From NCBI GenBank assembly GCA_029953675.1, contig JAMWBK010000012.1:434001-498000 (forward strand): a stretch of DNA of 64,000 nt, read 5' to 3'. A program made the translations under genes and the position numbers. Positions 2,512-58,747 of the stretch are shown here, in pieces (the first letter of the stretch is position 1; the number at the start of each line of letters is the position of its first letter). Below the pieces are notes generated by a model that searched no databases, was not told the DNA's origin, and saw only the letters and a list, made by a program, of their open reading frames with translations. Source of the stretch: Rhodosorus marinus CCMP1338 (taxonomy: Eukaryota; Plantae; Rhodophyta).

Positions 2512-2804
2512 CGATTCTTATATTGACGCAATTCTTATGCTCTGTCCGAGCCCAGCACGTTTGTGCACCACCATATCTTGATGATGCGCATTTTTCATGA
2601 CTGTCATGGTTCGACGAAAATACAACCCAAACAGCAGATATCATACTTCATGCAGGGTGGTGGCAAAGCTACTCCGCAGTCAGAGGTTGAAACTAGGTCT
2701 CACGATTCTGTGCTGGGGCTACGTTAGAAGGACGGTCATAAAAACCTTCAAGTCACTGGAAATATGACTGCCTTTCCATGAAAACGCTTCTCACAGACGC
2801 ACTT

Positions 2805-4456: not shown

Positions 4457-4524
4457 TGCCACCACTGGACTTTACTGGACTTTACTAGCATAGCCTGAAG
4501 CGCTACGCAAGGCGTGAAGATGAA

Positions 4525-7500
4525 CTAATAACTAGGGAGGGAAGCATGCAACCCCAGGCGCCGATGGCGCGCCTCGGAAAGCATGTCGCTGGAATATCGC
4601 CAAAGGGAGACACTTAAACGCCTCAAGAGCGCCAAATATTCAGTAGGATGCTCAGCAAAACATTTCCGCAACCACTCTAAACCCGACTTATCGACGTGAC
4701 CAAAGCTTTCCACAATGAATGGCTGGAACCGGTGAGAGCGACCCTCAGCGCAAGGCAGACTGGCCATGCTCTCAGCATACCGTCGTTCCTTAACTCTTCG
4801 AAGGGCTGAAGCCGCGGCCCCCCGGCGGCGGGCGGCTGCGGTGAGGTGGGCGCTGGCCACGGGGCAGGTAATCGCAAGGTCCACATATGTTGAGCGTCTG
4901 GCAGCAGCGTCGGAGACGAGGAGATCGGCTATACAACGGGGCGGTGCAGAGTCCGAGATGGATCTGGGCAGTTCCGACTCAACCTCAACCGTATGCCCTA
5001 TCCGAGTCAAAAATTCGCTGAGGATGTACTTGAGGCGAGTGTGACGCCTCGTACGGAGACCTCGCAACAGTCCGCAGGAACCCAGGAAGTGGTAGCCACA
5101 AGCGTCAATCCGGCTCTCACATCCCTGACAGAAAGACGGCCGATTAGAGTGCCACGGAGCCTGTGGCAAACCGAGATAGATGCGTGCGGCAGAACGGAAC
5201 TGGAAAGCATCGAGACGATGACTCAATGACGACGGTAGAGTGGTTAACCACAAGTGCGAGAGGTGGCCTCCCATGCCGCGGAGACGAGCGGCAGTGGTAG
5301 GCGGCGTGAGAGGAGAATTGAGCATGACTGTGTGAGCGGCACTGTGTTGGCCCCAGGTGAGGCTATGTTGAATCACATCAGTGCGGGAGCTCCACAATCG
5401 GCTCAAACCCGGGTAGTCTGCAACAGGGGACCCGGGGCTAGCCTCTCCGTCATCGGCAAGAACTCGGTCGAGGGGACAATCCTCAATCGCTTCAGCTCGT
5501 CCCCATAACAGCTCCCTCCAGGAACGAAAGCGGGACCTATTTGCGTCCGGCACGGCGTTGCACCTCCTGAACGCGTGTTGAAGACCATCATAAATTGTCA
5601 AAGCCGGGGGCGGCAGGGTCACTGGATCCTCGTTGGTCAAAGCTCGAGCCAAGAGGCAGGCACTTCGCATCCGGAAGGTCACCAACGTTCGCAGCGCGGT
5701 AGCCCAGGAGGCAACCGCCGCTGGCGAGCATACCAGCCCACGGTCTGCGACGCCGAATCCCCTAATCGCAACGGTAGAGCGATCTGTGCACGAATAAAGT
5801 CCCTGTCGGGAGCAGCTTCAAGATCGAGGGGCTCATCCAAGAGCGTTCCCCAGTGTTGCAGGGTCATTTCGTCGGCTTTAGCCGCGATCCACGAGCCCCA
5901 AGCTGGAGGCAGGCTGCGCAACCAGTAGTTGAGTCTGGGACCGGCACAAAAGCGGGAAAGCAAGCAGGCCGATTGCAGCATGCTGTCGGGTAGGTGCTCA
6001 ATGGCGTCGGTGAGTTGCTTGTGCCGTGCCAAAACTCGCTCGCAGGATGCTTGGACAAAGTTGTCAGTCCCCAATCCGACGCCGTGGTGTTCGAACCCTT
6101 CACGTTCGCTGATTAGTCGCAGAGTGGGTGGCAGAGAGTTCAGCGACACGTCCCTCGGGGGGAGAAAGCGACATTTTTCTGTTTCCACAGTCAAACCGAC
6201 GCGACGTGCAATCGCTTCGATCGCGGTCAGTCCCCTAGCCAGGGTGTCAGGGGTGCCCAGCAATGTTACGTCATCGTGGTACGCGCAGATTCGAAGATCC
6301 GAGACCTCAGTCGAAAGACGTAAAAGTACGAGCTGTAGGGCACAGGCATGAAGAAGAGGTCCGCAAGGGTCGCCTTGTTGGACGCCAGTATGTGCTTGAA
6401 AAACAGTGCCCTCCGTTGTCAAGTAGGGGAGGCTCTCCCCTCCGTAAATACCCGATAGAAACGGCCACGCCTCCGGAAACACACGTCGGAGCACCTCTAG
6501 CGCATGCGTCCGCGACACGCTGTTGAATGCATTCCGGAAATCAACCACCAAGACTCCCCACTCCGGCCTACTGGCGCGTTCTAGCTCGATCCCATGGGTG
6601 ATCAGTTCGCAACCCCAGAAAATCCCACCCCTACTTGCAAGGGCGCCATAAAAGCTGTGACGCGCTGGCGAAGGCGCTGGCATAGCCACCTCCCGGCTAA
6701 CTTCCGTAGGCTCTCCACCATCCCGATCGGCCGGAGACGCGGGTGGGCCGGCTGGTGGTCAGGTTTCGTGAGCAAGCAAAGCTGTGCCTGCCGGAGATGT
6801 TCCCATGGCGCGGACGCACCCGATACGCCCTGGAACAACTTGTTAAGGATCCTCAGAAGCGCGCTCTGGCCAGGCTGGCTCAGGGCCTGCAATAGCTCTG
6901 TTCTTAGTCCGGAGGGTCCAGGACAGCGTCCCCGACGCGAGGTACGAAGCAAATCCTCCAGGTCAGACTCACTGAGCGTCAGATCGATGCGAAACCTGGC
7001 CAACTCCGGACGGTCCAAGAATACCTCGAATTCAGGGGACAAATCCACGTCGGACTCAGGGAACAAAGACGACACCGTCTGGGCGAGACTATCATCGTAG
7101 GGGAGGACAGGCGCCTGGCCCTCCAAAACCCGCGCCGCTCGACTTAAATCGCCCACTGCTACCAATTTCTGTACTCGAGCTGGCACGGGCGACACTGTGC
7201 CATGCCGAGTCCGACGGGCGGATGGTGCTGACGACGCCAAATAGCTGCGCTGTAGTACTTCGAAGTCTCCCTTCAAGAACAGGGCCAGTCGGTCTCGTAC
7301 TCGCCATCTGCGCTCCGATGTGTGAATGGGGGCCAGAATCATGCGCGGCATGACCCCCAGAAAAACCCAAATGACTGTGTCCCGAATGTTGCGAGCCAGG
7401 CTCGTGAAGATGAAATCGAGAATGGTTCCAGCTACCAGAAGGTCTCCACGAGGAAGGACGACTGGGGGAATGCCCCCACGGAGGGGAAGCGAGCCTCCTT

Positions 7501-7594
7501 CCAAAGAAATCCACCGCCGGAGCCAACTCCGAAAACGCGTACGCCAAATGCCCCAGTCTCCGCCCTCCTTCAGGACATAAGACTGTAGATCCAT
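4525..7594 (-). CDS. Family A ORF2: reverse transcriptase + CCHC + restriction-like endonuclease; two single-base frameshifts (1023 aa if repaired)
   Basis: LRPIG, QVGVGFSG[G]CE, DFRNAFNSVSR, GVQQGDP, YHDD, CQGC-x-H-x-C, RTRRH, ADLLV...YVDL, FIVESFG. Frameshifts lie at C4 runs 6613-6616 and 5759-5762. Confidence 0.9.
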
Positions 7595-7625
7595 AGGCTG
7601 CGACCTCGCAGCCGTGCCTGGAGCG

Positions 7626-9035
7626 CTAATCGTGCTTCTCCCCCTTAGACCCGGGGGAGTCGGTCCTCGCTCTCTTACCTCCTATCCGCACCAAAGTCGT
7701 GAGCCTCCCACTCCGCGAGGCTCGCGGAACGGATCCCGCGGGCTTCAGCAAAGTAACCTGGGCGTCCTCCACCGCCATGCCCTCAGTCTGCTCCCCTGCC
7801 TCACCACTCTCGCTGGAAGTAGTGCTGGAAGCAGAGCCCTCCAAAATCCCCACCCGCTGCAGCTCTGTCTTGTAGCGCGAAGTCAGCACAAGTCGCCTCT
7901 CCAGATCGAAGAAACTGGAAACCGCCATGCGCAGGTGACGAGGGCCCGACCGGAACCGCGCCAACAAGATCCTCTCAAGGCGCTGAATCCGTAGCCAATG
8001 GATCGCTGCCGCCTTCACGCTGCTCTCATGCTCAGAGAGCCCTGCCGTTTCTCCCGGAGACAGGAAATTGCCCGAGAAACGGTCAAAATCGAAGTGCAAA
8101 ACCACCTGCGGGTTGCAGCGCAGCCACCGGGCGCTCTCAGGCCACTGCTCGGTAGGCTTCGCCAGCAAGGCCTCCAGGTACTTGGCGGCGGTTGCGGAGA
8201 CTAAAAACAGCACATCGCGGCCCTCATAGTTTGCGAAGAAGAAATCACCCCTGCTGCACCCTAACGATTCCGCAAAAGTGTCCCGGAAGTCTCGCATAGA
8301 CGGAACCTGTCCTCGTGTAGTCTGGGGCCGGACATTTCGCACCCACAGAAATTGGAGAGTGGTCTCCACAGGTCCATCCTGAGGCTCGCGAGATGGTATG
8401 AAACGGAGCATAGCCGCCGTACGTGTGGCAGTGGTGCCCTTCCGCAAGACTGATGCGTACGAAGCGCCCCCCTTGCGGCCACCACGTGCCCCCGAAGTAG
8501 CCGGGAGCTGGTGACGACCTGAGGGCTGGTCCAAGAGAGGGAAGTCCACAGCTGCAGTCTCCTCCACACCGGTTGCCGCACAGTCACCACCACCATTGCC
8601 TCGAGTCCCCGAGCGCTGAAGCGCGTTTTGGCCCGGCCTGCCGCTCCCCAACGTCGTACTGTCCCGCGCAGAAGCAACAGCCCTCGCCTGTCCCGGGACA
8701 GGTTCATGTTGATTGACCGGATGTTGACTGCCTTCAGCCAACGCTGCCACTCTGGGGCAATTCAAATTCTCGTCCGAATTTGAATTTGACCTGGCCAGCA
8801 ATCCCGATTCCAGCCCACCTAGCTTCTGGGTGAGCTGAGGGAGCACTCCACGATCACTCGCAGCCGTGATCAGGCTGGTGACAGCGGAGATAAGTGAACG
8901 CGCCTGGGTGCCAGAAGCGCCTTCCAAGTCAACCTCGGAAGAAAACGTGCCGCAGCTGAGGCGAACACGGAGTCCCCCACCTGGCAGTGCCTCCTTGGGA
9001 GGAGGCTCCGTCGAGTGCGGAGATATCCCTACCAT
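7626..9035 (-). CDS. Family A ORF1 (469 aa from first ATG), unknown gag-like/RNA-binding protein
   Basis: Long open frame ending 31 nt before the ORF2 ATG; second copy at 17860-18650; SYASVLRKG motif; no zinc knuckle visible. Confidence 0.75.
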   Translation of the reverse strand: MVGISPHSTEPPPKEALPGGGLRVRLSCGTFSSEVDLEGASGTQARSLISAVTSLITAASDRGVLPQLTQKLGGLESGLLARSNSNSDENLNCPRVAALAEGSQHPVNQHEPVPGQARAVASARDSTTLGSGRPGQNALQRSGTRGNGGGDCAATGVEETAAVDFPLLDQPSGRHQLPATSGARGGRKGGASYASVLRKGTTATRTAAMLRFIPSREPQDGPVETTLQFLWVRNVRPQTTRGQVPSMRDFRDTFAESLGCSRGDFFFANYEGRDVLFLVSATAAKYLEALLAKPTEQWPESARWLRCNPQVVLHFDFDRFSGNFLSPGETAGLSEHESSVKAAAIHWLRIQRLERILLARFRSGPRHLRMAVSSFFDLERRLVLTSRYKTELQRVGILEGSASSTTSSESGEAGEQTEGMAVEDAQVTLLKPAGSVPRASRSGRLTTLVRIGGKRARTDSPGSKGEKHD

Positions 9036-9216
9036 CCTGAGGGAATCCGCCAAGGAAACGTTGCACCACCAATATGAAACCGCACCGAGAGAATAATCGA
9101 CCAAACCCAACCCAAATAGGAAAGGCCCCGCAACTCCACCACTAGGTCGGCAACAAGGCGTTCTTCCCTCTGTTAGTCCGCCACAGGCAGGGACTTCTCA
9201 AATTAATGATACATCT

Positions 9217-9250
9217 AGTAAATCCCAGCCCAGTAAAACCACCACCACCC
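9217..9250 (+). mobile_element. Solo old-type family A tail
   Basis: tagtaaatcccagcccagtaaaaccaccaccacc, same type as the tails at 19031 and 24830. Confidence 0.55.
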
Positions 9251-9400
9251 CATCTCCCTCGTCAGACCCGACGAATTGTTAATCATGCATCATCAATAAA
9301 CGCGCGCGTACATTATGTGTCTCCGAATTATTAACACAATTCAGCACAATGGTTGAATTTCCCGCACTTCCAGCGGCTGACAGTTCTCCCGAAAAAAGGA

Positions 9401-9484: not shown

Positions 9485-12400
9485 CTTAGTTACAATCCGT
9501 CGTCACAGAGGCTCAACATCAGATTGGATCTTAAATACACTACGGGTAGTTCACGTACTGGCACTAATAGTCTCCTAGTGCTCCCTCAGCTTTTAGGTCT
9601 TCTCGACAGAATCGGGCGCGTCACGCGGTGGCAGGCGGTGATCTGCGGCGGGCAGCCGGGATCCTCCAGCAGCGGCAACCTGTGGTTCCATACTCCGATG
9701 ATCTTTCTTCACCGCTCCGTTTGCTCTTTCCCTCGGAAGGTTCCCCTTGGGACCCCTCGTTTGAATCAGTATTGGAAGAGTACCGCGCCGCGCCACATCC
9801 CAGTGCGCGGTTAGTGGTCAATCTGGAGGCGGTGCGTGAGTTGGTTCATGATGCTCCGAAGGGCCGTTCCCCAGGGCCCTCGGGGCTGCGGGTGGAATAT
9901 CTCCGTTTCTTAAGTGATGAAGGTTTGAAGGCGTTGGCGTGGGTGGTCGAAGCGCTTGTGAATGGTGATCCCCTGTGTGAGTGTGCGTGGTTCTTGGTCG
10001 GGCGTTCTCAGTTGTGTCTGCTTTCGAAGCCCGGCCACACGGCCTCGAGCCCTGCTATTCGCCCTATTGGCCTGGTTGAGGTGGTCCGCAAATTGGCGGC
10101 GCGATGGTTAGTGAAAATCCTGGTTCCCGAATCCCGCCGTCTCTTTGGGCACGTGCAGTTAGGCGTGGGCTATCGTGGTGGCTGTGAGTTGTTGTCTGTT
10201 TTACTCCGTTCGGAAATGGCGTACTCCCCAGATTCTGGGCTCCTCTCTGTAGATTTTACCAATGCGTTCAACCGCGTCTCTCGTCCGGCTCTCATGCACG
10301 TGGTGCGCGAAGTCTTCCCTGTAGACTTTCCCTTTGTTAGTAGACTTTATTCTCCGCTTGGTCGTGGGGCTACCTATGACACCCTTGGCGCTTCCTCACA
10401 CACGTTTGCGGCGCGCACAGGGGTACAACAGGGTGATCCCTTGTCCCCTTTCCTACATGCCTGTGGACTACAACTCGTCTTGCTTTGTCTTCGCTCCGAA
10501 TTCCCGCAGGTTCGTACGGTTGCATACCACGACGACGTGTGCCTCCTGGGGCCCCCTGATACTCTAGCACTCGCTTATGATCGTCTCCGCTCCTTGGCTT
10601 CGCGGGTTGACCTGGAGGTTAATCATCACAAATCGTTCTACTGGGGAGGTGTAGCTGCACAAGAGCAGCAGGTACCTGCGTCGTTCCAGGATATTTGGAG
10701 ACCGGATGGTTTTGTCCACTTAGGCATCCCCTACGGGTCGCCGTCCTTCGTTGAAGGCGAGTTGCTGCAGCTCCTCGGTTAGCACAGACAGCTGGTTGCA
10801 GAGCTTCGACGGCTACCTCCGGGCTTTCTCCAGTGCTCGTTGTTGCTGTTTCGGTATTGTTGCAGCCAGCGGTTAACCTATTGGCTTCGCTCACTTCCAA
10901 CTCATTGGGGCCCGTGGTTGGCCACTCGTGCGGATGCTGAAAGTTTCCGTGACCTGGGGTATTTTCTCGATGAAGAGCTGAGCGCTCTGCCGCGACCCAC
11001 CTGTGATGTTGTGCGCGCCCAGGTAGGCCTCCCATTGCGATTGGGGGGACTGGGCCTCTGCAATCGTGTTGTGGTCCAACCTGCAGCCGCAGTAGGGGCC
11101 TGGGGAACCGCACTTCCCACTTTGAGCAGCTTGGGTATCTCGAAGTTCCGCAATTTGATGGCGAGCCTCTCGCGGGGTGTCTTGCTTCCCAGCGTACCGG
11201 AAAGCGCCCAAGACTTGTTTCTGGAGCTCCAAACCGCCCTGAATTCCTGTACTAGTCTCCCCGAAACCGTTCAACCCCGTCTTCCTGACTGGCGAGCTGT
11301 ATTTAACCGCTCTCGAGGCTCCGCCCCGGGGATTCGTCCTGCGCCTGAACCTGTTCTAGGGGAGATTGACCCAGTGGTTGCCGCAGAAGAAGAAGTTCCA
11401 GTTGATGCTCCTGATGATTCCCAGCGCGCTGGGAGCCGAGCTCAAGCACGCACGGATGCGCTGCAAAATATCCTTTCTTGGGACTTGCACCGTGCTGCAT
11501 ATGGCCGACTCCTCGCGCAGATGGTCTCATCTTCTCGCGCTCGCGCCCGCCTACGTAGTCTTGGAGGGGTTATTAGCTCTCAGTGGCTCATGACCGTACC
11601 AGCCTTTCCGCCACTCACACTGTCGGATTTCGAAGTGCGTACTTCACTGCGCTTATACCTCGGCTTACATCAGCCCCCTTGGCCGTACGAGATGGGTTCG
11701 TCGTGCCCTCTCTGCTCTCAGACTGAAGACAACGCAGATTTTGGCGCCCACCTGCTCGCTAGTTGCCCGGCGGTGAAAGGTGCTCGAACCCGCCGCCACA
11801 CACGGATCTTGAACCTGTTATACCGGGAACTTCGGCCTATAGTCCGGCAAGCCGGTCTGGAAATCGAACGTGAGAAACCTTTACCCGTCGCGGACTTTCA
11901 AAATGATGAACGCCGTGTAGCCGACCTGGTGATCACCTGTGACGACAGCCGCCGTACCACATACGTTGATCTTGCTGTTCCTAACCCTCAAGCTAGTCGT
12001 TATCTCCCGGCTGCGGGGGAGCGCCGTGGATCTGCCTCCGCCAGCATGAGACGCCGCAAAGAGATCAAATACGCGGGGGCTTTGTCTTCCCCTGGTGTTC
12101 GTGCTTCGGCACTAGCACATCGCTTGGTACCCCTGATCATTGAGTGCTTTGGGTTCATGGACTCTGTTGGTTCTCGCTGGCTTCGGGAGTTGTTCCGCGA
12201 ACGCCCTGACCGTCTTCAATCGTTGTTTACCCGCTTAAGTTTCCTGCTGTAGCGCATGAATGCCGCTTTGATGTTGGAGGCGCGAGTACTTCGCCGCGCT
12301 TAGTCTTTTTTTCCCCTCGGGGTTTTTTTTTCAGCCTCCGATTAAACCATTCGTTCGTCGCAATAGTAGTGGTGCTATAGTAGACCCTACTACTGGAGAT

Positions 12401-14614: not shown

Positions 14615-16044
14615 CAGCCTTCAACCGCACTGGGGCTCGTGGATGGGTGCAGCCAAGGCAGACGAGGCGACGCTGAAGCACTGGGGAACGCTCTTGGATG
14701 AACTGGATGTGGAAGCGGCTCCTGACCGGGACCTAATTCGTGGCCAGATTGCCCTACCTTTACGATTAGGCGGATTTGGAGTGGCCGACCGTGGACTCGT
14801 ATGCTCGGCTGCGGAGGTCGCCTCCTGAGCTACCGCGCTTCGCACCTTGGTGAGTTTTCGGATGCGAAGTGCCTGCCTTTTGGCTAGGGCACTGACTAGC
14901 GAATACCCCGTGATCCTTCCGCCACCGCTTTCGAGTATTTATGATGCTTTCCAACAGGCGTTCAGTAAGTGAACGCCGTGCCGGACGAGAGCCGATCCTG
15001 ATTTCGCCTGGAAGGAGCTCTTATTGGGACGAACTGAGGCGATCGAGGACTCTCCCATCAACAGAGTACTACCGACGAGGGGGAAGCTAGCCCCGGGTCA
15101 CCGGTTGCCGATTACCCGGGTCTGGGCCGATTGTGGAGCTCGCGCACTGATGTGATTCAACACAGTCTCACCTGGGGCCAACACAGTGCCGCTCAGGCAA
15201 TCTTGCTCAACTATCCTCTCACACCGCCCACCACCGCCGTTCGCCTCCACGGCATGGGAGGCCATCTATCACATTTGTGGTTTACGACTGTGTCATCCCT
15301 GGGTCACCGTCTGGATGCCTTCCAGTTTCGCTCTGCCGCACGGATTTACCTGGGTTTGCCGCAAGCTCCGTGGCACTCTAATCGGCCGTCTTTCCATCGG
15401 GGATGTGAGGGTCGGATCGATGCGTGTGGTTACCATTTCCTAGGTTCATGCGGACTGTTGAGAGGTCTTCGTACGAGGCGTCACACTCGCTTCAAGTACA
15501 TCCTTAGCGAATGTTTGACTCGGGTAGGGCATACGGTTGAGGTGGAATCGGAACTACTCAGATCGCTCTCGGATAGGGCAACGCCCCGCTGTATCGCAGA
15601 TCTCCTCGTCTCCGATGCTCCCGCCAGACGCTCAGCTTATGTTGACCTCGCGATTACATGCCCTGTGGCAAGCGCCCATCTCACGGCCGCCGCCCGCCGC
15701 CGGGGAGCAGCTGATTCGGCCCTTCGCCGAGTGAAGGAACGACGGTATGCTGAGAGTATGGCCAGTCTGCCTCGCGCTGAGGGTTGCTCCCATCGGTTCC
15801 AGCCTTTCATTGTGGAAAGCTTTGGTCACGTGGAGAACCACTCGGGTTTAGAGTGGTTGCGGAAATGTTTTACTGAGCATCCTGTTGAATACTTGGAACT
15901 TTTGCGGCGTTTAAGAGTCTCTCTGTGGCGATATTCGAGCAGCATGCTTGCCGAGGCGCGCCATCGGCGCCTAGGCTTGCAGGCTTCCCTACCCAGTTCT
16001 TAGTTCCTTTTCACGCTTTGTGTAGCGCTTTAGGCTATGCTAAT
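14615..16044 (+). mobile_element. Family A' 5'-truncated copy with stops and frameshifts
   Basis: QIALPLRLGGFGVADRGLV and ORF 15131-16003 (CCHC/RLE); ends gctatgctaat. Confidence 0.9.
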
Positions 16045-16164
16045 GATATTCCAGCGACATGCTTTCCGAGGCGCGCCATCGGCGCCTGGGGTTGTATACT
16101 TCCCTCCCTAGTTATTAGTTCATCTTCACGCCTTGCGTAGCGCTTCAGGCTATGCTAGTAAAGT
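16045..16164 (+). mobile_element. Family A 120-nt 3' fragment fused to the 5' side of U2
   Basis: gatattccagcgac...gctatgctagtaaagt, matching the A 3' end. Confidence 0.93.
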
Positions 16165-16353
16165 CTTCTCGGCCTTTTGGCTAAGATCAAGTGTAGTATC
16201 TGTTCTATCAAGTGTAACAACTTGATGCATCTAAATTTTAGATGCTTTTGTTACAAATATTTTTCTGGAGGGGTTTATGTTTGGTTAGTGGCTTGCCACG
16301 CCCGTTTACCGCGCTTTGCTCAGATTTTGCACTGCTTTCTGTTGCGGAGCACC
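16165..16353 (+). ncRNA. U2: U2 spliceosomal snRNA sequence, missing about 4 nt at the 5' end; probably a retrocopy
   Basis: CTTCTCGGCCTTTTGGCTAAGATCAAGTGTAGTATCTGTTCT; branch-point recognition GTAGTA (16193-16198); stem IIa (16207-16226), IIb (16227-16245), IIc complement (16213-16220/16248-16255); Sm-like ATTTTTCTGG; stem III with CTTG loop; stem IV with TTGCAC loop. Confidence 0.97.
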
Positions 16354-16355
16354 TC

Positions 16356-16468
16356 TTCAGCGACATGCTTTCCGAGGCGCGCCATCGGCGCCTGGGGTTG
16401 CATACTTCCCTCCCTAGTTATTAGTTCATCTTCACGCCTTGCGTAGCGCTTCAGGCTATGCTAGTAAA
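16356..16468 (+). mobile_element. Family A ~112-nt 3' fragment fused to the 3' side of U2
   Basis: cagcgacatgc...gctatgctagtaaa. Confidence 0.93.
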
Positions 16469-17598
16469 TTTATGATGGTCTTCAACACGCGTTCAGGAGG
16501 TGCAACGCCGTGCCGGACGCAAATCGGTCCCGCTTTCGTTCCTGGAGGGAGCTGTTATGGGGACGAGCTGAAGCGATTGAGGATTGTCCCCTCGACCGAG
16601 TTCTTGCCGATGACGGAGAGGCTAGCCCCGGGCCCCCTGTTGCAGACTACCCGGGTTTGAGCCGATTGTGGAGCTCCCGCGCTGATGTGATTCAACATAG
16701 CCTCACCTGGGGCCAACACAGTGCCGCTCACACAGTCATGCTCAATTCTCCTCTCACGCCGCCTACCACTGCCGCTCGTCTCCGCGGCATGGGAGGCCAC
16801 CTCTCGCACTTGTGGTTAACCACTCTACCGTCGTCATTGAGTCATCGTCTCGATGCTTTCCAGTTCCGTTCTGCCGCACGGATCTATCTCGGTTTGCCAC
16901 AGGCTCCGTGGCACTCTAATCGGCCGTCTTTCTGTCAGGGATGTGAGAGCCGGATTGACGCTTGTGGCTACCACTTCCTGGGTTCCTGCGGACTGTTGCG
17001 AGGTCTCCGTACGAGGCGTCACACTCGCCTCAAGTACATCCTCAGCGAATTTTTGACTCGGATAGGGCATACGGTTGAGGTTGAGTCGGAACTGCCCAGA
17101 TCCATCTCGGACTCTGCACCGCCCCGTTGTATAGCCGATCTCCTCGTCTCCGACGCTGCTGCCAGACGCTCAACATATGTGGACCTTGCGATTACCTGCC
17201 CCGTGGCCAGCGCCCACCTCACCGCAGCCGCCCGCCGCCGGGGGGCCGCGGCTTCAGCCCTTCGAAGAGTTAAGGAACGACGGTATGCTGAGAGCATGGC
17301 CAGTCTGCCTTGCGCTGAGGGTCGCTCTCACCGGTTCCAGCCATTCATTGTGGAAAGCTTTGGTCACGTGGATAAGTCGGGTTTAGAGTGGTTGCGGAAA
17401 TGTTTTGCTGAGCATCCTACTGAATATTTGGCGCTCTTGAGGCGTTTAAGTGTCTCCCTTTGGCGATATTCCAGCGACATGCTTTCCGAGGCATACTTCC
17501 CTCCCTAGTTATTAGTTCATCTTCACGCCTTGCGTAGCGCTTCAGGCTATGCTAGTAAATTCCAGTAAAGTCCAGTAAAGTCCAATAAAGTCCAGCAA
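16469..17598 (+). mobile_element. Family A 1.1-kb 3' fragment with the 23-nt deletion and a long tail
   Basis: ORF 16510-17508, near-identical to 4525-5590 but ending EAYFPP. Confidence 0.95.
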
Positions 17599-18668
17599 GG
17601 GGTTTTTGCTGGGGTTTTGTTGTGAACATTGGGGTTTTGTTTCTTTTTCGGTCGTGAGCGTGTTCGTTTACGGGAAGCGCTTTCTCTGGTACGCCTTCCC
17701 CTCGATTTTCCGCGGTGCGTCGTTTGCATTTGCAACTACTTCTGTCTTCGGGGTGGGTGTGTTGCGGGGCCTTTCCTATTTGGGTTGGGTGTGGTCGATT
17801 ATTCTCTCGGTGCGGTTTCATATTGGTGGTGCAACGTTTCCTTTGCGCATTCCCTCAGGATGGTAGGGATATCTCCGCGCTCGACGGAGCCTCATCCCAA
17901 GGAGGCACTGCCAGGTGGGGGACTCCGTGTTCGCCTCAGCTGCGGCACCTTTTCCTCCGAGGTTGACTTGGAAGGCGCTTCTGGCACCCAGGCGCGTGCA
18001 CTTATCTCCGCTGTCACCAGCCTGATCACGGCTGTGAGTGATCGTGGAGTGCTCCCTCAGCTCACCCAGAAGCTAAGTGGGCTGAAATCGGGATTGCTGG
18101 CCAGGTCAAATTCAAATTCGGACGAGAATTTGAATTGCACCAGAGTGGCAGCGTTGGCTGAAGGCAGTCAACATCAGGTCAATCAACATGAACCTGTCCC
18201 GGGACAGGCGAGGGCGGTTGCTTCTGCGAGGGACAGTACGACGTTGGGGAGCGGCAGGCAGGGCCAAAACGCGCTTCAGCGATCGGGGACTCGAGGCAAT
18301 GGTGGTGATGACTGTGCGGCAACCGGTGTGGAGGAGACTGCAGCTGTGGACTTCCCTCTCTTGGGCCAGTCCTCAGGTGGTCACCAGCTCCCGGTTACTG
18401 CGGGGGCACGTGGAGGCCGCAAGGGGGGCCCTTCGTACGCCTCAGTCTTGCGGAAGGGCACCACTGCCACACGTACGGCGGCTATGCTCCGTTTCCTACC
18501 ATCTCGCGAGCCTCAGGATGGACCTGTGGAGACAACTCTCCAATTTCTGTGGGTGAGAAATGTCCGGCCCCAGACTACACGAGGCCAGGTTCCATCTATG
18601 AGAGACTTCGGGGGGACACTTTTGCGGAACGCTAGGGTGGAGCCGGGGTGATTTCTTCTTCGCAAACT
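17599..18668 (+). mobile_element. Family A 5' part (5' leader + N-terminal half of ORF1), 3'-truncated
   Basis: Homologous to the reverse complement of 8230-9135 and extends about 160 nt further 5'. Confidence 0.88.
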
Positions 18669-18779: not shown

Positions 18780-19030
18780 GCAGAAGGCTAAAAAAAGATG
18801 AATCTATATTCAATCAGATATGATAGGTTCAATCAATAGCAAATGCTTCACTACCCCGCTTACGACAGGGCGTATATCTGCAGATGATCTCGTACAATGA
18901 AATTATTTTCTACATTCTTCTTTCTTACGCGTTCCATTTAGGGGTGAACGATATGTACGAGTGCGAATCTTTACTTCAATCCATTGTTCCATAGTCAATC
19001 AATGTGAGAGTTTTTGATAGGGGGAGCACT

Positions 19031-19193
19031 TGGTGGTGGTGGTTTTACTGGTTTTTCTTAGCATAGCCTAAAGCGCTACGAAAGGCGTGAAAAGGAACTA
19101 AGAACCCGGGAGGGAAGCGTGCAAACCCAGGCGCCGATGGCGCGACTCGGCGAGCATGTTGTTAAAATACCGCCAGAGTGCGATACTTAAACG
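19031..19193 (-). mobile_element. Older family A 3' fragment with (AGTAAAACCACC)-type tail
   Basis: ggtggtggtggttttactgg...gcatagcctaaagcgctacg. Confidence 0.85.
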
Positions 19194-20856: not shown

Positions 20857-23316
20857 ATGAGATTCTTCAGGAGAGCGAGAGGCGAGGAGGAAATTGAGGA
20901 AGATAAGGTTGTGCATGCCGCGACTGCAGACCTGAATAGGGCTGGGGATACGGGCAGCAAGGTGTCTAACATGGAGAGTGGTAAGGAAAACTGCGCAGAT
21001 GAGAAGAACGGGGATGCTCGAGGGTCAAATTTGGACGCCGTGGTGGATATGGAAGACTTGAAAACGAATCACATCAAGGTGGAGTATGACGAGCTGCCAC
21101 AGAAGAACATTGGCCTTGAGGTCCGTGGTGCTAAGGATATCCAGAGGCTCGCTGAGGAAACGAACTTTGACGCACCAACTGACTCTGTTGTTATGCTTGA
21201 CGTTGAAGCCTCGAACCCGTCGACAGTTCTCGATGTTGCCATGAAAGGCCTCGTGGAGTACGCAGCGTTTCCTGCCAGCCTTGCCGGCGAGGCTAGGGCT
21301 AACCTCTTGATCCAGGACGTGGACAGGTCAGTTGACCAACTTCAAGGTGACAAATACGTGTCTGGAAAGGCTTCCACCGAATTCATGTGGCGTAGATACA
21401 TCCAAGGGAACGGTTTTATCGTCACCTACGGGCGTGTGTACGGACTCGACAGGAGACTTTCGGTGATACTGCGCTTAGTGAAACAGGAAAACTGTTCCAA
21501 GTTCGATCCATCCGCTCCTGCGTTCGTAGCAATAGCGATAGCTCCGACGATCGAGCAGAAGGCTACCAAAACTGAATATGAAGTAGCTCGGAACTTTGCC
21601 GCAATGCTCCAGGACGAGGAGTTCTACAAGGAAGCATATTCTGCTCCGAATGAAGAGCACGTGAGATCTGCGGCGGCCAACTATGTGGAAAAGAGGGTGG
21701 TTTACGAGGATGACATGTACGCAAACGGATTGAAAGGAGGAGATGTCGGATTTGAGGATATGAGGCGAACTGGAAAACTCTTTGGGGGTTTAATTGCGGA
21801 TATCAAGAGGAAATATAAGTGGTCTGTGTATAAATCGGATTGGACCGATGGAATGACGGAGTGGAGAAGTATTTTGAAGTATATCTCGACAACCGCATGG
21901 CTGTATTTTGCTGTTATAATGCCCGTCATCGCCTTTGGATCCCTCAACAATGTGAACACGCGGCAGCAAATTGGGGTTTCCGAAACTGTTCTCTCGCAGG
22001 CAATATGTGGTGGCCTCAGTGCTCTGTTTTCAGGCCAGCCCTTGGCAATATCAATGACCACGGGACCTGTGACTGTGTTTATCGGTATCCTCTTCTCGTG
22101 GTCGGAGGGACTGAGAATTCCTTTCCTTCCGTTGTACGCGTGGACGGGGATCTGGACAGCGATAATACTGACTCTGATTGTCATGTTCGACCTCATAGCT
22201 TACGTACGATTTGTGGGGCAGTTCACGGAAGAGATCTTCTCAATGCTCGTGGCGCTTATCTTCATTTCGAACTATATCCAACCGTTGGTGAACACTGCAT
22301 ACGAAGAGACTACGGACATATTTTTGCTATCTTTCCTCCTGGCCGCCGGGATGTACGTCATGTCTAGGTGGTTCAGTTTGTTTGAGCGAAGATACATATT
22401 GAATGGAATCACGAGGACGTTGCTGGCGGACTTTGGAATGCCTTTTTCCGTCCTTGTTTGGTCGGGAATAAGGCAAATCTTCACCAACGTAAATGTGGAA
22501 ATGCTTCAGGTTCCAGAGAGTGGTGGAATCGTCACAACCAACGGTCGTTCTTGGATTGTGCCTCTAGGCGATTTACCCGTTGGATGCGTATTTCTCGCCT
22601 TTGTTCCGGGCCTCCTCCTTGCTATGTTGTACTGTGTTGACCAAAATGTCGCTGTACTACTCACCAACAAGAAGGAGAACAAGCTTAATAAGGGCGTCGG
22701 ATACTTTCTGGACATGCAGGTGGTCGCTGTTTCCGTATTCGTTTGTTCACTTCTGGGTATACCATGGGCAAACGCGGCCATCCCACATTCACATCTTCAT
22801 GCAAGGATACTCTCGGAGAAAGAGGAGTACGAATCTCATGGCAGAGTCGAGTATAGGGTTGTCCAAGCCAGGGAGGTTCGGATCACCAATTTTTTGACGC
22901 ACGTTCTGATTTTTGCCTCCATGTTCCTTCTATTTATCGTGGGATATATTCCAACATCTGTGGTCTGGGGTTTCTTCCTGTACATTGGTGTGGCAACTTT
23001 GGATGGAAACCAAATGTTCGAGAGGCTACTTCTGGTATTCACCCAGCCTACAAAATATCCACCAAACCACTACGTGAGACGCGTTCCGATGATGCGCATA
23101 GTTCTGTACACTCTGATTCAGTATGCTCTGCTAGTCCTGCTTTGGTTCGTGAATGTGAACTTCTATTTGCCTCCGGGTGGCGTCTTTAACGCGGGGCTCT
23201 TATTTCCATTTGTTATCATATTGTTTGTGCCAATTCGAATGTTCTTGCTCCCAAAGATTTTCCTGCGCAAGGAACTCCACGCCCTGGAAATGGAAAAGGA
23301 AGACTTTAGCGACTAG
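20857..23316 (+). CDS. SLC4: SLC4/band-3-family anion (bicarbonate/borate) transporter; start uncertain (ATG 20857 or ~20971)
   Basis: GKLFGGLIADIKRKY...SDWTDG, AFGSLN, ALFSGQPLAI, TGPV, FTEEIFS, DQN, KGVGYFLD, HLHA, VREVRITN, FLYIGV, NQMFER; many TM segments; intronless. Confidence 0.93.
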   Translation: MRFFRRARGEEEIEEDKVVHAATADLNRAGDTGSKVSNMESGKENCADEKNGDARGSNLDAVVDMEDLKTNHIKVEYDELPQKNIGLEVRGAKDIQRLAEETNFDAPTDSVVMLDVEASNPSTVLDVAMKGLVEYAAFPASLAGEARANLLIQDVDRSVDQLQGDKYVSGKASTEFMWRRYIQGNGFIVTYGRVYGLDRRLSVILRLVKQENCSKFDPSAPAFVAIAIAPTIEQKATKTEYEVARNFAAMLQDEEFYKEAYSAPNEEHVRSAAANYVEKRVVYEDDMYANGLKGGDVGFEDMRRTGKLFGGLIADIKRKYKWSVYKSDWTDGMTEWRSILKYISTTAWLYFAVIMPVIAFGSLNNVNTRQQIGVSETVLSQAICGGLSALFSGQPLAISMTTGPVTVFIGILFSWSEGLRIPFLPLYAWTGIWTAIILTLIVMFDLIAYVRFVGQFTEEIFSMLVALIFISNYIQPLVNTAYEETTDIFLLSFLLAAGMYVMSRWFSLFERRYILNGITRTLLADFGMPFSVLVWSGIRQIFTNVNVEMLQVPESGGIVTTNGRSWIVPLGDLPVGCVFLAFVPGLLLAMLYCVDQNVAVLLTNKKENKLNKGVGYFLDMQVVAVSVFVCSLLGIPWANAAIPHSHLHARILSEKEEYESHGRVEYRVVQAREVRITNFLTHVLIFASMFLLFIVGYIPTSVVWGFFLYIGVATLDGNQMFERLLLVFTQPTKYPPNHYVRRVPMMRIVLYTLIQYALLVLLWFVNVNFYLPPGGVFNAGLLFPFVIILFVPIRMFLLPKIFLRKELHALEMEKEDFSD

Positions 23317-24825: not shown

Positions 24826-25420
24826 GCGGTTGGTGGTGGTTTTACTGGTGGTTTTACAAACATAGCCTGAAGCGCTATGCAGTACGTGAAAAGGAATTAG
24901 GAGCTAGGGAGAAAAGCGTGCAATGGCGCAGCTCGGCGAGCATAATGCTAGAACATCGCCCGAGAGCGACACTTAACCGGCACAGGAGTCCCAGATATAC
25001 AACAGGATGGCCAGTAAAACATTTTCGCAGCCACTCCAAGCTGGACTTTCCAGATGCACAAAGCCTTCCACAATGAAAGGGGTTGTCGCCTGACCTGCTA
25101 CGCATGACGTGAAAGGGAAATAGGAGCTAAGGAGAAAAGAGTGCAAATTCAGGCGGCCATGGCGCAGCTCGGCAAGAGCGCGGCTAGAATATCACCACAG
25201 AGCGCCACTTAAACGGCGTAGTGCCAGCTACTCAACAAGATGGTCAGCAAAGCATTTTCGCATCCACTTCAACCTGGACTTTCCAGATCCACAAAGCTCT
25301 CCACAATGAAAGGCTGGAACCTGTGAGAACGGCCCTCTGCCCAGCGGGGACTGGCATAGATCCATCTCATCTGACTGAAGCAAACCAGCGACCCTCGGGT
25401 AGGTGGTAAGGACTTGGAGT
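24826..25420 (-). mobile_element. Two tandem old family A 3' fragments
   Basis: Two successive 3' UTR-like units (~24860 and ~25100) with GKSSLEWLRKCF-like coding remnants. Confidence 0.7.
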
Positions 25421-27234: not shown

Positions 27235-30200
27235 ATGACTGGGCGTCGTCCAAGTTCCAGTTCCCGCACGCGTAAGAGAGTCCGCCACCCGCAGCTGTTC
27301 TACATGGACGTGGACCGCTGGGTTACTCGGCTTGACCTGTTCCTGCAAACCCACACCGAGAATGGCACCCTTTGGTGGGCTTTGACTCACTCCCCTACGA
27401 ATACGCGAGAACACGTCCCTTCGGGACAAGTCCCAGCATGGAGCGCGCTTTTCAAATATGCCCTGGAAGTGGCCCTGGATGGCAGCGCCCCGGACCTCCG
27501 CCGCCTTTTTGTCCAGGTACTGCCTAGTCTGATCCTGGGATATGCTCGTGATCTTACCATGCCTGCCCAAGTCGAGATGCTGCTTGAGGGCGACTTCGAA
27601 CCCTTGTGGCGTGCAATTTCTGCTACTCGTCAGCGCACAACTGCCGCTTCTTCTGCAACTCGTACTCCGCGCTCGCCGTTTTCCTCCCGTCGTGTCCTCC
27701 ATAAGGCGAAAAATCGCCGCCTCTCTCAAGCAGCACAGCACATCCTTTCGACCCCGCTTGCCCCGAGAACTCAACAAACCTGGGAGGTCCTCGAAGCGAT
27801 GTTCCCGGACCTTCCCGACGCGGTCCTACATCCCCAACTGGAGGAGTGTTTGTCGGCCAGTCTCCATGCTTCTGCACCTCGGCCGAGTCCCTTATGGGAA
27901 GCTCGGCTGGCTTCGGATGAATCGATACTTGTACTTTTACAACGACTCCCCGCTGGTATAAGCCCTGGCCCGAGTGGCCTTCGGGTAGAGCACCTGCAGG
28001 CTCTCGAACACCATGTCCGCCCAGCCCTAGTCCGGTTCCTTCGAATGATTAGCACGGACCCCGAGACTCTGCCAGAGATCCTACTCCACAGCCTCCGGAG
28101 TAGTCGTATCGTGCCTCTGGCTAAGAACCCCACCTCGGAGCCGGGGACTTCTTCACCCCGCCTACGCCCCATTGGCATTCCCGAGGTGCTGCGCAAGGTT
28201 GCTTCACAATGGGTCTTACAACACGTCGTGCCCCGCGCTCGTGATTTCCTGCTGCCTACTCAACTCGGTGTTGGCGTCTCCGGGGGCTGTGAAGCAGTCC
28301 TCCACACGCTCCAGGCTCATCTACACTATGAACCTGACCACATTCTACTGAAACTCGAACTGGAGAACGCGTTTAACCGCATCGATCGCCGTCTGGCGAA
28401 ACGCATTATCGAAGCGCGCTTTCCGGAGTTGCTCCCCCTCTATGTGCTCGGGTATGGTCCTGATTCCGCGGATGGTTCGTACCACTTCGGCTGGCTTCCT
28501 GACGACAGCTCCCCTTCTTCCGCTCGAGACGGCTTCTTCCTCCGATCGCGTACTGGCGTTCAACAAGGGGATCCTCTCGCACCGGCGCTGCATGCCCTGG
28601 CCCTTTCGCCTTTTCTTATGGCGATGCGCACTCTCTTTCCCCGCATCACGGTGCTCGCGCTCCATGACGACATTAGCTTGGCGGGCCCCTACTACGATAT
28701 TCACGAGGCATTTCAGTGGAGTCAACGAGTTTTAAGCTCGCTCGGCGCGAGACTGCAACCGGATAAATGCGTCCTCTTTGGCCATCGGATTGACTCGCCA
28801 AGGCTTGTCAACCACGACTTCCCCGAAGTTCACGTTACGCGGCACGGCGTCATGCTGCACTCTGTTCCAGTAGGCACCCGGGCCTTTGTCATCGGAGCCT
28901 GCCGAAAGCTGCAAAACACACACGCCAAGCTTGTCAAAGGGATTCAGAAACTCCCCGAAGGCGAGTTGCAGACGAAGTTGGCGCTCTTCCGCTACTGTGC
29001 TGGTCCGCGGTTAGGCTATCATCTCCGCTGCCGGGCTCTTCCTTTTGGCGCGCTTCTTGCTACTGAGGCGGACACCATCACAATGCACGAGTTGGATACG
29101 TTGTGCGGAAGTCTGCTTCTTCTCCAAGGGCTTCCACGGGAGGAGTTGGAGACCGTGAAAGCCCAAATTCGCTTACCTGGCAAGTGGGGTGGCCTTGGCC
29201 TGGCTACGCGCGTTCGTATTCACCCGATTGCTTTTTATTCCGCTTGGACTCGCACGCGTCAGACTAACGCCGCTGACAATACCTTTCTGAGACGTCTGGG
29301 TACGGCGTGCCGCGGGACCGATCCCAATGCCGAACCTATTCTCGAGGATCTCTCCAGCTCAACGGATCTTCTGGACCAGCAGCTCTCGCTCGCTAGCCGC
29401 TGGACCACTTCTCGCCTCAGCTCCCGCACTTCTGCTCGTATTCGCGCCCTCGCTCTTTGGTCCAAGGCGCTTCCAACAGATGATGCCGCTCCAGCTTCCA
29501 TCAATCCTCCGCTCGCAGGTCCTCTACCACAAATATTCTCTCAGGAGAGTCACCGTAGAGCGTTTGAGGATATCGTGGATGATTCCGCGCTCGACGATTG
29601 CACTCGTGCTCGTGTCCGCTCTGCTTCTGGTGCTGGCGCTGGTGGCTGGCTTCGGGACCTCCCTAGCACAGGGTCTGAACCCCTTTCCACCGAAGAAATC
29701 CGATGCAGTTTACGCTTGCTTTTGGGGCTCCCGGTACCTGGTCTCCGCACTACCCCTGAATGCACAGTCTGTGGCAAAGCACACGCTGCGGATGGGACCC
29801 AACGTCTTTTTCACTGTTCCACTTCGGCTGGGAATAGGACTCTGCGCCATAATCGGATTCGTGATGAGCTCGTGAGTCACCTTCGGCGGTGGCACCTTCC
29901 GGATGTTCAGGTTGAGCCTTATGGGTTTTTTGAGGGTAGTCGTCTCCGCCCTGACATAGTCGTCCGTCATCACCGCACGGGTAAGCAGTACGTTATCGAT
30001 GTCAAGGTGGAATCCCCATGGCCCATCTCCTCGCTCGCGCCGCATGTCAATCGGGTTATGCCGCCGCCAATGCTGAAGCCGGGAAACGAGCCAAGTATCG
30101 GGATGCCATCGGTGACCACAATGATTTCCACTTTGTACCCTTCGCCATCGAAGGTTTTGGACGACTTGGCCAAGCGGCCCAAGACTTCATTACAGAAATT

Positions 30201-56992: not shown

Positions 56993-58747
56993 ATGGATTT
57001 ACTGGCTTTATTGGACTTGACTTTACTAGCATAGCCTGAAGCGCTACGCAAGGCGTGAAGATGAACTAATAACTAGGGAGGGAAGCATGCAACCCCAGGC
57101 GCCGATGGCGCGCCTCGGAAAGCATGTCGCTGGAATATCGCCAAAGGGCGTTATTAGCATAGCCTACAGCGCTACGCAAACCGCGAAAAGGAACTAAGAA
57201 CTAGGTAGGGAAACGTGCAAACCCAGGCGCCGATGGCGCGCCTCGGCCAGCATGCTGCTCGAATATCGCCACAGAGAGACACTTAAGCGCCGCAAAATTT
57301 CCAAGTATTCAACAGGATGCTCAGTGAAACATTTCCGCAACCACTCCAAACCCGACTTCTCCACGTGACCAAAGCTTTCCACAATGAAAGGCTGGAACCG
57401 GTGGGAGCGACCCTCAGCGCGAGGCAGGCTGGCCATACTCTCAGCATACCGTCGTTCCTTCACGCGGCGAAGGGCCGAAGCAGCTGCTCCCCGGCGGCGG
57501 GCGGCAGCCGTGAGATGGGCGCTTGCCACAAAAATCCATCTCATCTGCCGGAATCGAAGCAGCGACCCTAGGATAGCTGCCGCAACTACAGTCATTCATT
57601 CAACTACAGTCCCATGCTCTGCCAACTGAGCTAAGATGAGTGGTGTATGGATTTACTGGACTTTACTAGCATAGCCTGAAGCGCTACGCAAGGCGTGAAG
57701 ATGAACTAATAACTAGGGAGGGAAGCATGCAACCCCAGGCGCCGATGGCGCGCCTCGGAAAGCATGTCGCTGGAATATCGCCAAAGGGAGACACTTAAAC
57801 GCCTCAAGAGCGCCAAATATTCAGTAGGATGCTCAGCAAAACATTTCCGCAACCACTCTAAACCCGACTTATCGACGTGACCAAAGCTTTCCACAATGAA
57901 TGGCTGGAACCGGTGAGAGCGACCCTCAGCGCAAGGCAGACTGGCCATGCTCTCAGCATACCGTCGTTCCTTAACTCTTCGAAGGGCTGAAGCCGCGGCC
58001 CCCCGGCGGCGGGCGGCTGCGGTGAGGTGGGCGCTGGCCACGGGGCAGGTAATCGCAAGGTCCACATATGTTGAGCGTCTGGCAGCAGCGTCGGAGACGA
58101 GGAGATCGGCTATACAACGGGGCGGTGCAGAGTCCGAGATGGATCTGGGCAGTTCCGACTCAACCTCAACCGTATGCCCTATCCGAGTCAAAAATTCGCT
58201 GAGGATGTACTTGAGGCGAGTGTGACGCCTCGTACGGAGACCTCGCAACAGTCCGCAGGAACCCAGGAAGTGGTAGCCACAAGCGTCAATCCGGCTCTCA
58301 CATCCCTGACAGAAAGACGGCCGATTAGAGTGCCACGGAGCCTGTGGCAAACCGAGATAGATGCGTGCGGCAGAACGGAACTGGAAAGCATCGAGACGAT
58401 GACTCAATGACGACGGTAGAGTGGTTAACCACAAGTGCGAGAGGTGGCCTCCCATGCCGCGGAGACGAGCGGCAGTGGTAGGCGGCGTGAGAGGAGAATT
58501 GAGCATGACTGTGGATTTACTAGCACAGTCTGAAGCGCTTCGCAGGGTGTGAAAGGAAACCAGAAACTAGGGAGAAAAGCGTGCAAACTCAGGCGGCGAT
58601 GGCGCGCCTCGGCGAGCATGCTCCCATAGCGCGACAATTAACCGGGTAGGGTCCCAGATATTCAACCGAATGGGCAGTAAAACATTTCCGCATCCACTCC
58701 AAGCTGGACTTTTCCATTTGCCCAAGGTTTTCCACCATGAAACGTAG
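56993..58747 (-). mobile_element. Five-unit array: A (56993-57148), A' (57151-57529), pre-tRNA (57530-57648), A (57649-58513), older-type A (58514-58747)
   Basis: All units co-oriented and abutting; candidate TSD gcacctcat(a/g)ct(g/a)g at 56979-56992 and 58748-58761. Confidence 0.85.
57539..57640 (-). tRNA. tRNA-Tyr: tRNA-Tyr(GTA) with 11-nt canonical 37/38 intron; disrupted (7-nt insertion plus 11-bp TSD, and G53C)
   Basis: Acceptor stem CTCATCT/AGATGAG + A73; D arm GCTC-AGTTGGCA-GAGC; anticodon arm TGGGA-CTGTAG[intron]A-TCCTA; T loop TTCGATT; no encoded CCA; TTTTT 4 nt downstream. Confidence 0.93.

Follow-up and report, generated by a model that had tools for sequence, protein, structure and literature searches.

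Chimeric retrocopies in which a small nuclear RNA (snRNA) is fused to part of a long interspersed element (LINE) are known from mammals, where snRNA/LINE-1 chimeras, U6/L1 among them, have been explained by template switching (Buzdin 2002/2003; Garcia-Perez 2007; PMC4476161; PMC11838501); PMC4494074 cites a few cases with U1 and U2, and RNA ligation is an alternative route to the U6/L1 type (PMC6789731). In Magnaporthe grisea, the chimeras of WEIRD, Mg-SINE and MGL include a tripartite one bracketed by 14-bp repeats and show preferred switch sites (PMC2104539). The crocodilian SINEU families are short interspersed elements (SINEs) headed by U1 or U2, with the addition of the snRNA at the 5' end attributed to a template switch; they were amplified, end in poly(A) and, in the case of SINEU-2 and SINEU-3, are thought to have been mobilised by Tx1 LINEs (PMC4494074). 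Utopia, of the restriction-like endonuclease (RLE) type, and Keno, of the apurinic/apyrimidinic endonuclease (APE) type, occupy a fixed site in the U2 gene, and the downstream U2 sequence begins at nucleotide (nt) 39 (PMC4640811). The reverse transcriptase (RT) of R2 jumps between templates in vitro (Bibillo and Eickbush, as cited in PMC4494074; PMC8594491; PMC8857657). Here we describe a locus of the unicellular red alga Rhodosorus marinus CCMP1338, within a window of 64,000 nt (the whole stretch analysed, positions 434,001 to 498,000 of contig JAMWBK010000012.1 in assembly GCA_029953675.1), at which a U2 snRNA segment lies between two 3' ends of a predicted R2-like LINE, which we call A (A' denotes its subfamily). 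We consider it likely that this segment is a retrocopy (pseudogene) of a mature-length U2 snRNA, made by the A-family RT after template switching.

The Rfam model RF00004 matches the plus strand at 16161-16357 with 147.6 bits (gathering score 46; E 2.3e-30), and the alignment covers model positions 1-192, untruncated; on the contig this corresponds to about 450161-450357. The onset of U2-specific sequence is CTTCTCGGCC at 16165, at about nt 5. The AAAGTC at the 5' junction is the continuation of the A tail consensus (GCTAGTAAAGTCCAGTAAA), and U2 proper therefore begins only with C5 or U6; the canonical nt 1-4 are absent, with AAGT of the tail in their place. This shortfall of 4-5 nt is counted against the Rfam consensus and one foreign U2 (L005, from an unrelated organism, with the 5' end AUACCUUCUCGG), and the ends in R. 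marinus may differ. The branch-point-binding GTAGTA lies at 16193, nt 5-46 agree with the U2 consensus, and stems I, IIa, IIb and IV are intact in the Rfam alignment, stem III having two mismatched pairs. Stem-loop IIa (16207-16226) reads ATCAAG-TGTAACAA-CTTGAT, and its loop (16213-16220) has an exact 8-nt reverse complement in the IIc partner TTGTTACA at 16248-16255; the equivalent positions are UUUAAUAU and its complement AUAUUAAA in the Rfam consensus, and the covarying pair UGUGAAAA/UUUUCACA in L005. The score is close to that of a bona fide U2 gene (147.9 bits for L005), and the sequence runs uninterrupted across nt 38/39, through GTAGTATCTGTTCT. Given the retained conserved elements, the consensus match at nt 5-46 and a score level with a bona fide gene's, the source looks to have been a functional U2 and the copy looks young, which has no bearing on function at the locus itself. 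A permissive Rfam scan of the whole window at E<=1 yielded no additional small-RNA fragments, and neither it nor a short-word BLAST detected another U2 piece there.

There is LINE sequence on either side of U2 and no spacer, promoter or 3' box beside it; we know of no promoter motifs for red-algal snRNA genes. The 5' junction reads ...GCTAGTAAA(16162) GTC(16165) TTCTCGGCC, or, with a longer upstream stretch, ...GCTATGCTAGTAAA GTC TTCTCGGCC, and the 3' junction reads ...GGAGCACCTCTT(16357)/CAGCGACATGC(16358), such that the base directly after U2 is position 4552 of A. The flanks are 98.3% (upstream, 121 nt) and 99.1% (downstream, 111 nt) identical to A. The two junction 22-mers are GGAGCACCTCTTCAGCGACATG and GCTAGTAAAGTCTTCTCGGCC, one of them spanning 16347-16368. 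A first, sequence-only reading of this stretch had described a U2 starting near nt 5 and complete at its 3' end, joined directly to an A 3' end on each side with no promoter or flanking DNA between, with a IIa loop matched by IIc bases, hence from a functional source, and distinct from the insertions of Utopia and Keno inside the U2 gene. All of this is borne out: by the identity of the flanks and the direct joins, by the alignment to model position 192 with tail sequence replacing nt 1-4, by the exact complementarity of a IIa/IIc pair that is unlike Rfam's, by that covariation together with the consensus at nt 5-46, and by the continuity of U2 across nt 38/39.

The element shows no predilection for U2. 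The window contains 19 instances of the 23-nt tail end GCGCTTCAGGCTATGCTAGTAAA, usually continued by GTCCAGTAAAG, where 0 would be expected, and A does not target U2, because just one of these 19 tails adjoins it; in L002, from another contig of the assembly, and L003, a transcript contig of another Rhodosorus strain, none does. We rejected A as a Utopia-like U2 targeter on this count and because the junction lies at about nt 5 rather than nt 39.

The U2 segment is part of a longer concatemer, whose five pieces, closed by a repeat array (Table 1), all have the same orientation, every downstream piece being 5'-truncated. The A' copy at its upstream end has the tail end GCTATGCTAAT, cut at GCTAAT and lacking the usual terminal AAA. 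The tail upstream of U2 terminates in AGTAAAGTC, the first terminal-repeat unit, and the same AGTAAAGTC is found again at the 3' end of the composite (17563-17591), which closes with a canonical LINE 3' terminus: GCTAGTAAA, followed by the terminal repeats. In A copies that adjoin non-element DNA, GCTAGTAAA is likewise followed by 0.3 to 4.2 units of AGTAAAGTCC. A 23-nt tail deletion is present in the 1.1-kb copy that ends the composite and in the copy at 2270-2514 and absent from both short tails, and the 1.1-kb copy and the short tails must therefore stem from different source RNAs. A simple local duplication as the origin of the 111-nt tail and the 1.1-kb copy is excluded, the tails being different variants.

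Table 1. Pieces of the concatemer that contains U2 and of the tRNA-Tyr composite, with the reference copy of A (pieces on the minus strand are listed 5' to 3' on that strand)
Feature	Position	Strand	Remarks
A' subfamily copy, 5'-truncated	14616..16044	+	~83% to A, 88% to the A' copy at 34698-36130
A tail fragment, 121 nt	16045..16165	+	A 4545-4665; ends GCTAGTAAA + GTC; abuts the A' tail
U2 snRNA segment, probable retrocopy	16165..16357	+	~nt 5 to final Rfam model position; C16165 common to U2 and tail
A tail fragment, 111 nt	16358..16468	+	A 4552-4662; ends GCTAGTAAA, no terminal repeats
A copy, 1.1 kb, 5'-truncated	16467..17559	+	A 3547-4662, 97.4%; 2-nt AA overlap with preceding tail
Terminal repeat array AGTAAAGTCC, 4.2 units	17554..17597	+	marks 3' end of the composite
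tRNA-Tyr composite, parallel to the U2 composite	56993..57659	-	pieces in the rows below its host copy
Upstream A copy ending GCTAGTAAA GTCCAGTAAATCCAT	58513-57648	-	host of the tRNA-Tyr composite
CCAGTAAATCCAT, like a target-site duplication, first copy	57659-57647	-	
Leader ACACCA, 6 nt	57646-57641	-	
tRNA-Tyr(GUA), 32-nt intron	57640-57539	-	Rfam 44.6 bits
Trailer TGGATTTTT, ending in a T5 run	57538-57530	-	
A' fragment, directly after the trailer	57529-57151	-	then CG filler
A tail, 134 nt, plus repeats	57148-57015	-	repeats end ...CCAGTAAATCCAT
CCAGTAAATCCAT, like a target-site duplication, second copy	57005-56993	-	unrelated DNA beyond
Reference copy of A and the longest one, 4679 bp, frameshifted	4464..9142	-	RT domain in open reading frame 5679-6689; C-terminal motifs in open reading frame 4525-5685

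The 23-nt deletion shared by the copies at 2270-2514 (minus strand) and 17427-17559 (plus strand) takes out a GC-rich hairpin, GCGCGCCATCGGCGCC; since it is common to two A copies, a source element that bore the deletion was active. A G/T-rich stretch (17598-17650, plus strand) with GGGGTTTT-like units (GGGGTTTTTGCTGGGGTTTTGTTG...ATTGGGGTTTTG) separates the terminal repeats of the U2 composite from the 5' end of the A copy that follows.

A second small RNA is caught up in the same kind of structure. A search for small RNAs abutting A tails had been proposed from the letters of the window, and within the window it yields a copy of a tRNA-Tyr precursor fused to A' and A fragments, located inside the terminal repeats of an older A copy. 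The intron-containing tRNA was detected by Rfam and missed by ARAGORN. The 13-mer CCAGTAAATCCAT brackets this composite and has only these two occurrences in the 64 kb; the pair reads as a target-site duplication (TSD) around one inserted complementary DNA (cDNA). Because a unique 13-mer encloses the whole, as in the tripartite chimera of Magnaporthe, the arrangement indicates a single integration of a multi-template cDNA that joined a primary tRNA transcript to two LINE fragments.

Elsewhere on the minus strand, at 25360-25395, a degenerate tRNA-Tyr 3' half with its trailer (86% identity across 36 nt) is directly followed by an A-like fragment, here joined at another position of A; the A-like fragments nearby lie at 25088-25355 and 24841-25080, the latter being a second A-like tail. 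Two origins are conceivable: a separate capture of greater age, or descent with divergence within a SINE-like family built of tRNA-Tyr and a LINE tail.

The type of enzyme encoded by A can be judged from its motifs and from its relative B, a second family in the window with an intact R2-like open reading frame (ORF) of 1034 amino acids (27235-30339) preceded by one of 386 amino acids. A has an RT domain (Pfam RVT_1, E 1.5e-13) and a C-terminal region reading CQGC...CGYHFLGSC...RRH...E...ADLLV...YVDL, of the pattern CxxC...C..H....C...RH...E...AD...D (Cys/His motif plus RLE). In B the region reads CTVC...HC...RHN...E...RPDIV...IDVK (pattern CxxC...HC...RHN...E...PD...D.K), and the C-terminus of A aligns to this Cys/His-endonuclease region (BLASTP E 1e-4). 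An AlphaFold model of B ORF2, built from a 26-row alignment, had a mean local confidence score (pLDDT) of 72 and a predicted template-modelling score (pTM) of 0.74, with low to moderate values for the endonuclease part (pLDDT ~50-70). The seven best PDB matches in a fold search with this model were all R2 proteins (E 1.6e-18 to 7e-16), with L1 ORF2p behind, whereas a PDB sequence search with B ORF2 did not reach R2 and gave only weak matches to L1 RT. Since the C-termini of A and B align and the B model matches R2 proteins best, both elements are, by motif and predicted fold, R2-like RLE LINEs, with the corresponding layout: an RT, then a C-terminal Cys/His motif and a PD-(D/E)xK-type endonuclease, and no APE domain. 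R2 in the strict sense was ruled out for both: neither A nor B sits in 28S ribosomal DNA, their tails adjoin their own repeats and diverse sequences, and Rfam gave no rRNA match in the window.

The A ORF stops only ~45 nt before the end of the element, and what we call its tail is therefore mostly coding sequence plus a short 3' untranslated region. A terminal hairpin of 7 bp lies in the latter, and L002 shows one compensatory variant of it; beyond that hairpin no conserved RNA structure was found in the 3' tail, and the fold of 160 nt is unexceptional (z -1.56). At 30420-30447 (plus strand) B ends in ...GAAAGAGTAAAGTC, and an A copy truncated at its 5' end follows at once; the B and A tails share just the AGTAAAGTC end.

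The junctions among these pieces fall into two classes. In the first, terminal repeats are retained where a tail meets the following piece (4464/4458, 34503-34543, 56152-56136 and 57661-57641), which fits integration into an existing tail. In the second, which is common and includes both tail-to-tail and tail-to-internal joins, there are no repeats, or 2-4 odd bases: 16044/16045, 16468/16469, 57151-CG-57148, 58516-TC, 419-441 and 36133, as well as the passage from B to A at 30446/30447 and position 3616/3624 of L003; the filler bases at some of them are CG and TC. The starts of the short tail fragments, at A positions 4523, 4536, 4545 and 4552, fall in a 30-nt zone just 5' of a predicted GC-rich hairpin, and this clustering suggests a preferred switch site. 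Template switching is favoured because it predicts junctions that lack repeats, the presence of filler bases and a donor position used by preference. If A transcripts ended in ...GCUAGUAAA(GUC) without repeats, this would account for the repeat-less internal junctions.

Related Rhodosorus sequence has junctions of this sort. In transcript contigs of another Rhodosorus strain (an MMETSP strain, JGI 3300016967; L003 3600-3800 and L007 1040-1211), an A-type tail with the end GCTACTAAAT is followed by TCAG and a 169-nt A tail fragment, and tail-to-tail concatemers are therefore present and transcribed in the related strain. Tail-to-tail junctions occur in L002, L003, L007 and L008; these four contain no U2 or tRNA, and U2 is likewise missing from the ~35 kb of other Rhodosorus sequence as a whole (L001-L003, L007, L008). 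A protein search for other A copies gave five matches, one of which came from the R. marinus assembly itself (P0178, leading to L002).

The simplest origin, and the best explanation, of the junction at 16357/16358 is that the RT abandoned an A RNA after copying the last 111 nt and took up synthesis again at the 3' end of U2. On the reading we favour, target-primed reverse transcription would begin on an A RNA (represented by 16467-17559 and the terminal repeats), then switch to the 3' end of a second A RNA, of which the last 111 nt alone would be copied, and switch again to the 3' end of U2 snRNA, with copying up to about nt 5. The cDNA end would then either be extended by another switch, onto a further A 3' end, or be attached to chromosomal DNA within the first terminal-repeat unit of an A tail already present there. 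The shared orientation and the 5' truncation of the pieces would follow because cDNA synthesis would run from the 3' piece to the 5' piece. For the 5' junction, a further jump and, by analogy with the tRNA composite, integration into an A tail already in place account equally well for what is seen; this side is ambiguous because AGTAAAGTC stands both at the end of the upstream tail and among the repeats with which the composite closes. Three causes could lie behind the lack of nt 1-4: the cap together with 2'-O-methylation of the first nucleotides, microhomology through the shared C or GTC, or plain 5' truncation. The sequence-only reading had proposed two RT jumps; the one from A RNA to the U2 3' end stands as the simplest account of 16357/16358 and is backed by the tRNA chimera, but the one from the U2 5' end is not established, given that AGTAAAGTC allows integration.

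Several points weigh against this interpretation. The repeat-keeping junctions in the window imply that A-family elements insert into existing tails, and a history of serial insertion is possible for some junctions. The only candidate TSD around the U2 composite is AGTAAAGTC, itself the terminal-repeat unit of the element. Part of ACCTCTT, the 7 nt 3' of stem IV that fit the model, could be precursor sequence or added bases. The genuine U2 locus was not recovered: a 32-nt lineage-specific U2 pattern had 0 matches in metagenome contigs, and a relaxed 29-nt pattern found there only two U2 genes, both of other organisms (L005, L006).

Of the other histories that could be proposed, we consider serial, separate insertions into the ends or terminal repeats of existing A tails to be unlikely, if by no means negligible. 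Here a trans-mobilised U2 RNA, or a SINE-like unit of U2 and the 111-nt tail, would have been inserted on its own, and the 1.1-kb A copy would have arrived later at the tail end of that unit. Such a history would suit the several junctions that keep AGTAAAGTCC-type repeats between a tail and a 5'-truncated copy, as well as the position of the tRNA composite in the repeats of an older A copy, and U2 plus a LINE tail is the architecture of SINEU (PMC4494074). It would nonetheless still demand a template switch or a read-through transcript for the U2/tail junction, and three or four independent events at exact tail ends within 1.5 kb; the junctions 16044/16045 and 16468/16469 are wholly without repeats, and the presence of a single U2 in the window and the ~35 kb of other Rhodosorus sequence also speaks against it. 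A chimeric RNA might instead have been formed beforehand and then retrotransposed as one template, either by ligation, in the way that RtcB gives rise to U6/L1, or because transcription of a U2 gene ran on into an A fragment inserted immediately behind it. We think this very improbable. RtcB requires an end with a 2',3'-cyclic phosphate or a 3'-phosphate, present on U6 but not known for mature U2 and pre-tRNA; the tRNA chimera, for its part, ends exactly at the terminator U-run, and the starts of the A fragments cluster, as would be expected of an RT switch site. CTCTT between stem IV and the A tail could nevertheless be U2 3' flank, and ligation is documented for U6/L1 (PMC6789731).

We give still less credence to a genuine chromosomal U2 gene hit at both ends by A insertions. 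The score on a par with that of L005 and the retention of the conserved elements checked are what such a gene would show, and RLE LINEs that target U2 exist in the form of Utopia; yet the first 4-5 nt are missing, the sequence upstream is a coding-derived LINE tail, the LINE fragment downstream starts from the base after the RNA end, so that a 3' box has no space, nothing interrupts the Utopia/Keno site at nt 38/39, 18 of the 19 tails lie away from U2, and two insertions would be needed exactly at the boundaries of the RNA. The chance of an assembly artefact, or of DNA recombination between the near-identical 111-121-nt tails, seems to us just as slight. The resemblance of the two flanking tails and the repeat density of the region do make mis-joins conceivable, but tail mis-joins cannot generate U2/tail junction sequences, the contig is 1.16 Mb long (1,155,867 bp), and comparable tail-to-tail junctions occur in the transcripts of the other strain (L003, L007) and on another contig (L002).

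If the U2 segment is a retrocopy acquired by template switching, as we favour, its nearest relatives are the chimeras described at the outset. With the U6/L1 type it shares a small nuclear RNA in sense orientation, fused at its 3' end to the 3' part of a 5'-truncated LINE, with no promoter; it differs in the LINE, which here is R2-like and of RLE type with a specific 3' tail and 10-nt terminal repeats, L1 being of APE type with poly(A), and also in its red-algal host, in a U2 that lacks ~4 nt at the 5' end and in the position of the chimera within a longer concatemer. The Magnaporthe chimeras resemble ours in the head-to-tail joining of three transcripts, in preferred donor positions and in their direct repeats (14 bp, against 13 bp for the pre-tRNA composite), although LINE clade and host are others, the RNAs captured here are U2 and a tRNA-Tyr precursor, and the U2 composite has no clear TSD. 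SINEU shares with the U2 segment and its 111-nt A tail a U2-derived head and a LINE-related 3' part; SINEU families are amplified, whereas here there is one copy in the window and none in L001-L003 and L007-L008. Utopia is likewise an RLE LINE beside U2 sequence and also occurs in tandem, but at the present locus U2 is continuous from ~nt 5 to its 3' end, a LINE fragment lies 3' of it, and all but one of the tails are elsewhere.

In the biochemistry of Bombyx R2, the RT that reaches the 5' end of an RNA continues at the 3' end of a second one, with no need for homology between them. Jumps of such an R2-type RT would fit the junctions that lack repeats and have CG or TC as filler; the record here is genomic, and the donors are internal positions or fragments of RNA. 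Bibillo and Eickbush reportedly observed in 2004 that a few untemplated nucleotides are often added where R2 RT jumps. Template jumping by R2-type RTs is well documented in the test tube and has been exploited for RNA sequencing and gene insertion, and to our knowledge there are few natural genomic records of it. The U2 locus and its pre-tRNA twin would offer such a record of multi-template cDNAs, with a preferred switch zone, junctions with and without filler and, as captured RNAs, a capped snRNA and an unprocessed tRNA precursor. They also point to a route by which small-RNA-headed SINEs could arise from a LINE with a stringent tail. The novelty of the locus had been overstated at first reading, since snRNA/LINE chimeras, tripartite chimeras and U1/U2-headed SINEs have all been published (PMC4476161, PMC2104539, PMC4494074, PMC11838501). 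What is new is the clade of the LINE, which is R2-like and has a specific tail followed by 10-nt terminal repeats, together with the red-algal host and the occurrence of U2 and pre-tRNA chimeras together in concatemers; the known picture is unchanged and is extended to another LINE clade and another eukaryotic lineage.

It is conceivable, though we regard it as quite doubtful, that the A-family RT makes frequent serial end-to-end jumps in vivo, with a switch zone ~110-135 nt from the RNA 3' end and recurrent capture of transcripts of both RNA polymerase II (U2) and RNA polymerase III (pre-tRNA-Tyr), and that the modules "U2 + 111-nt tail" and "tRNA-Tyr + tail" are nascent or already amplifying SINEs. 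The U2 module would then be an snRNA-headed SINE outside crocodilians, mobilised by an R2-like enzyme.

Other features of the window concern its repeats and genes. A third LINE family, distantly A-like (~40% amino-acid identity), has copies at 11074-12357, 46501-47541, 59193-59796, 59822-61104 and 54473-54936; these are at least 99% identical to one another and have a distinct T-rich tail, and the family appears to have been active very recently. Tail-repeat-like CTAGTAAATCCCAGCCCAGTAAAACCACCACC (9225-9260, plus-strand reading) and CCAGTAAAACCACCACCACC (19020-19050) lie beside element ends of opposite orientation, and insertion may favour CCAGTAAA-type repeats whichever way they are oriented. 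At 40350-40472, several sub-threshold matches to microRNA precursors on both strands of one ~100-nt stretch suggest a long hairpin or palindrome within a repeat rather than a real microRNA. Amid this retrotransposon-rich region, at 20857-23316 (plus strand), lies an intron-less gene for an SLC4-type bicarbonate transporter of 819 amino acids, with 71% identity to Porphyridium purpureum over a 538-amino-acid C-terminal query.

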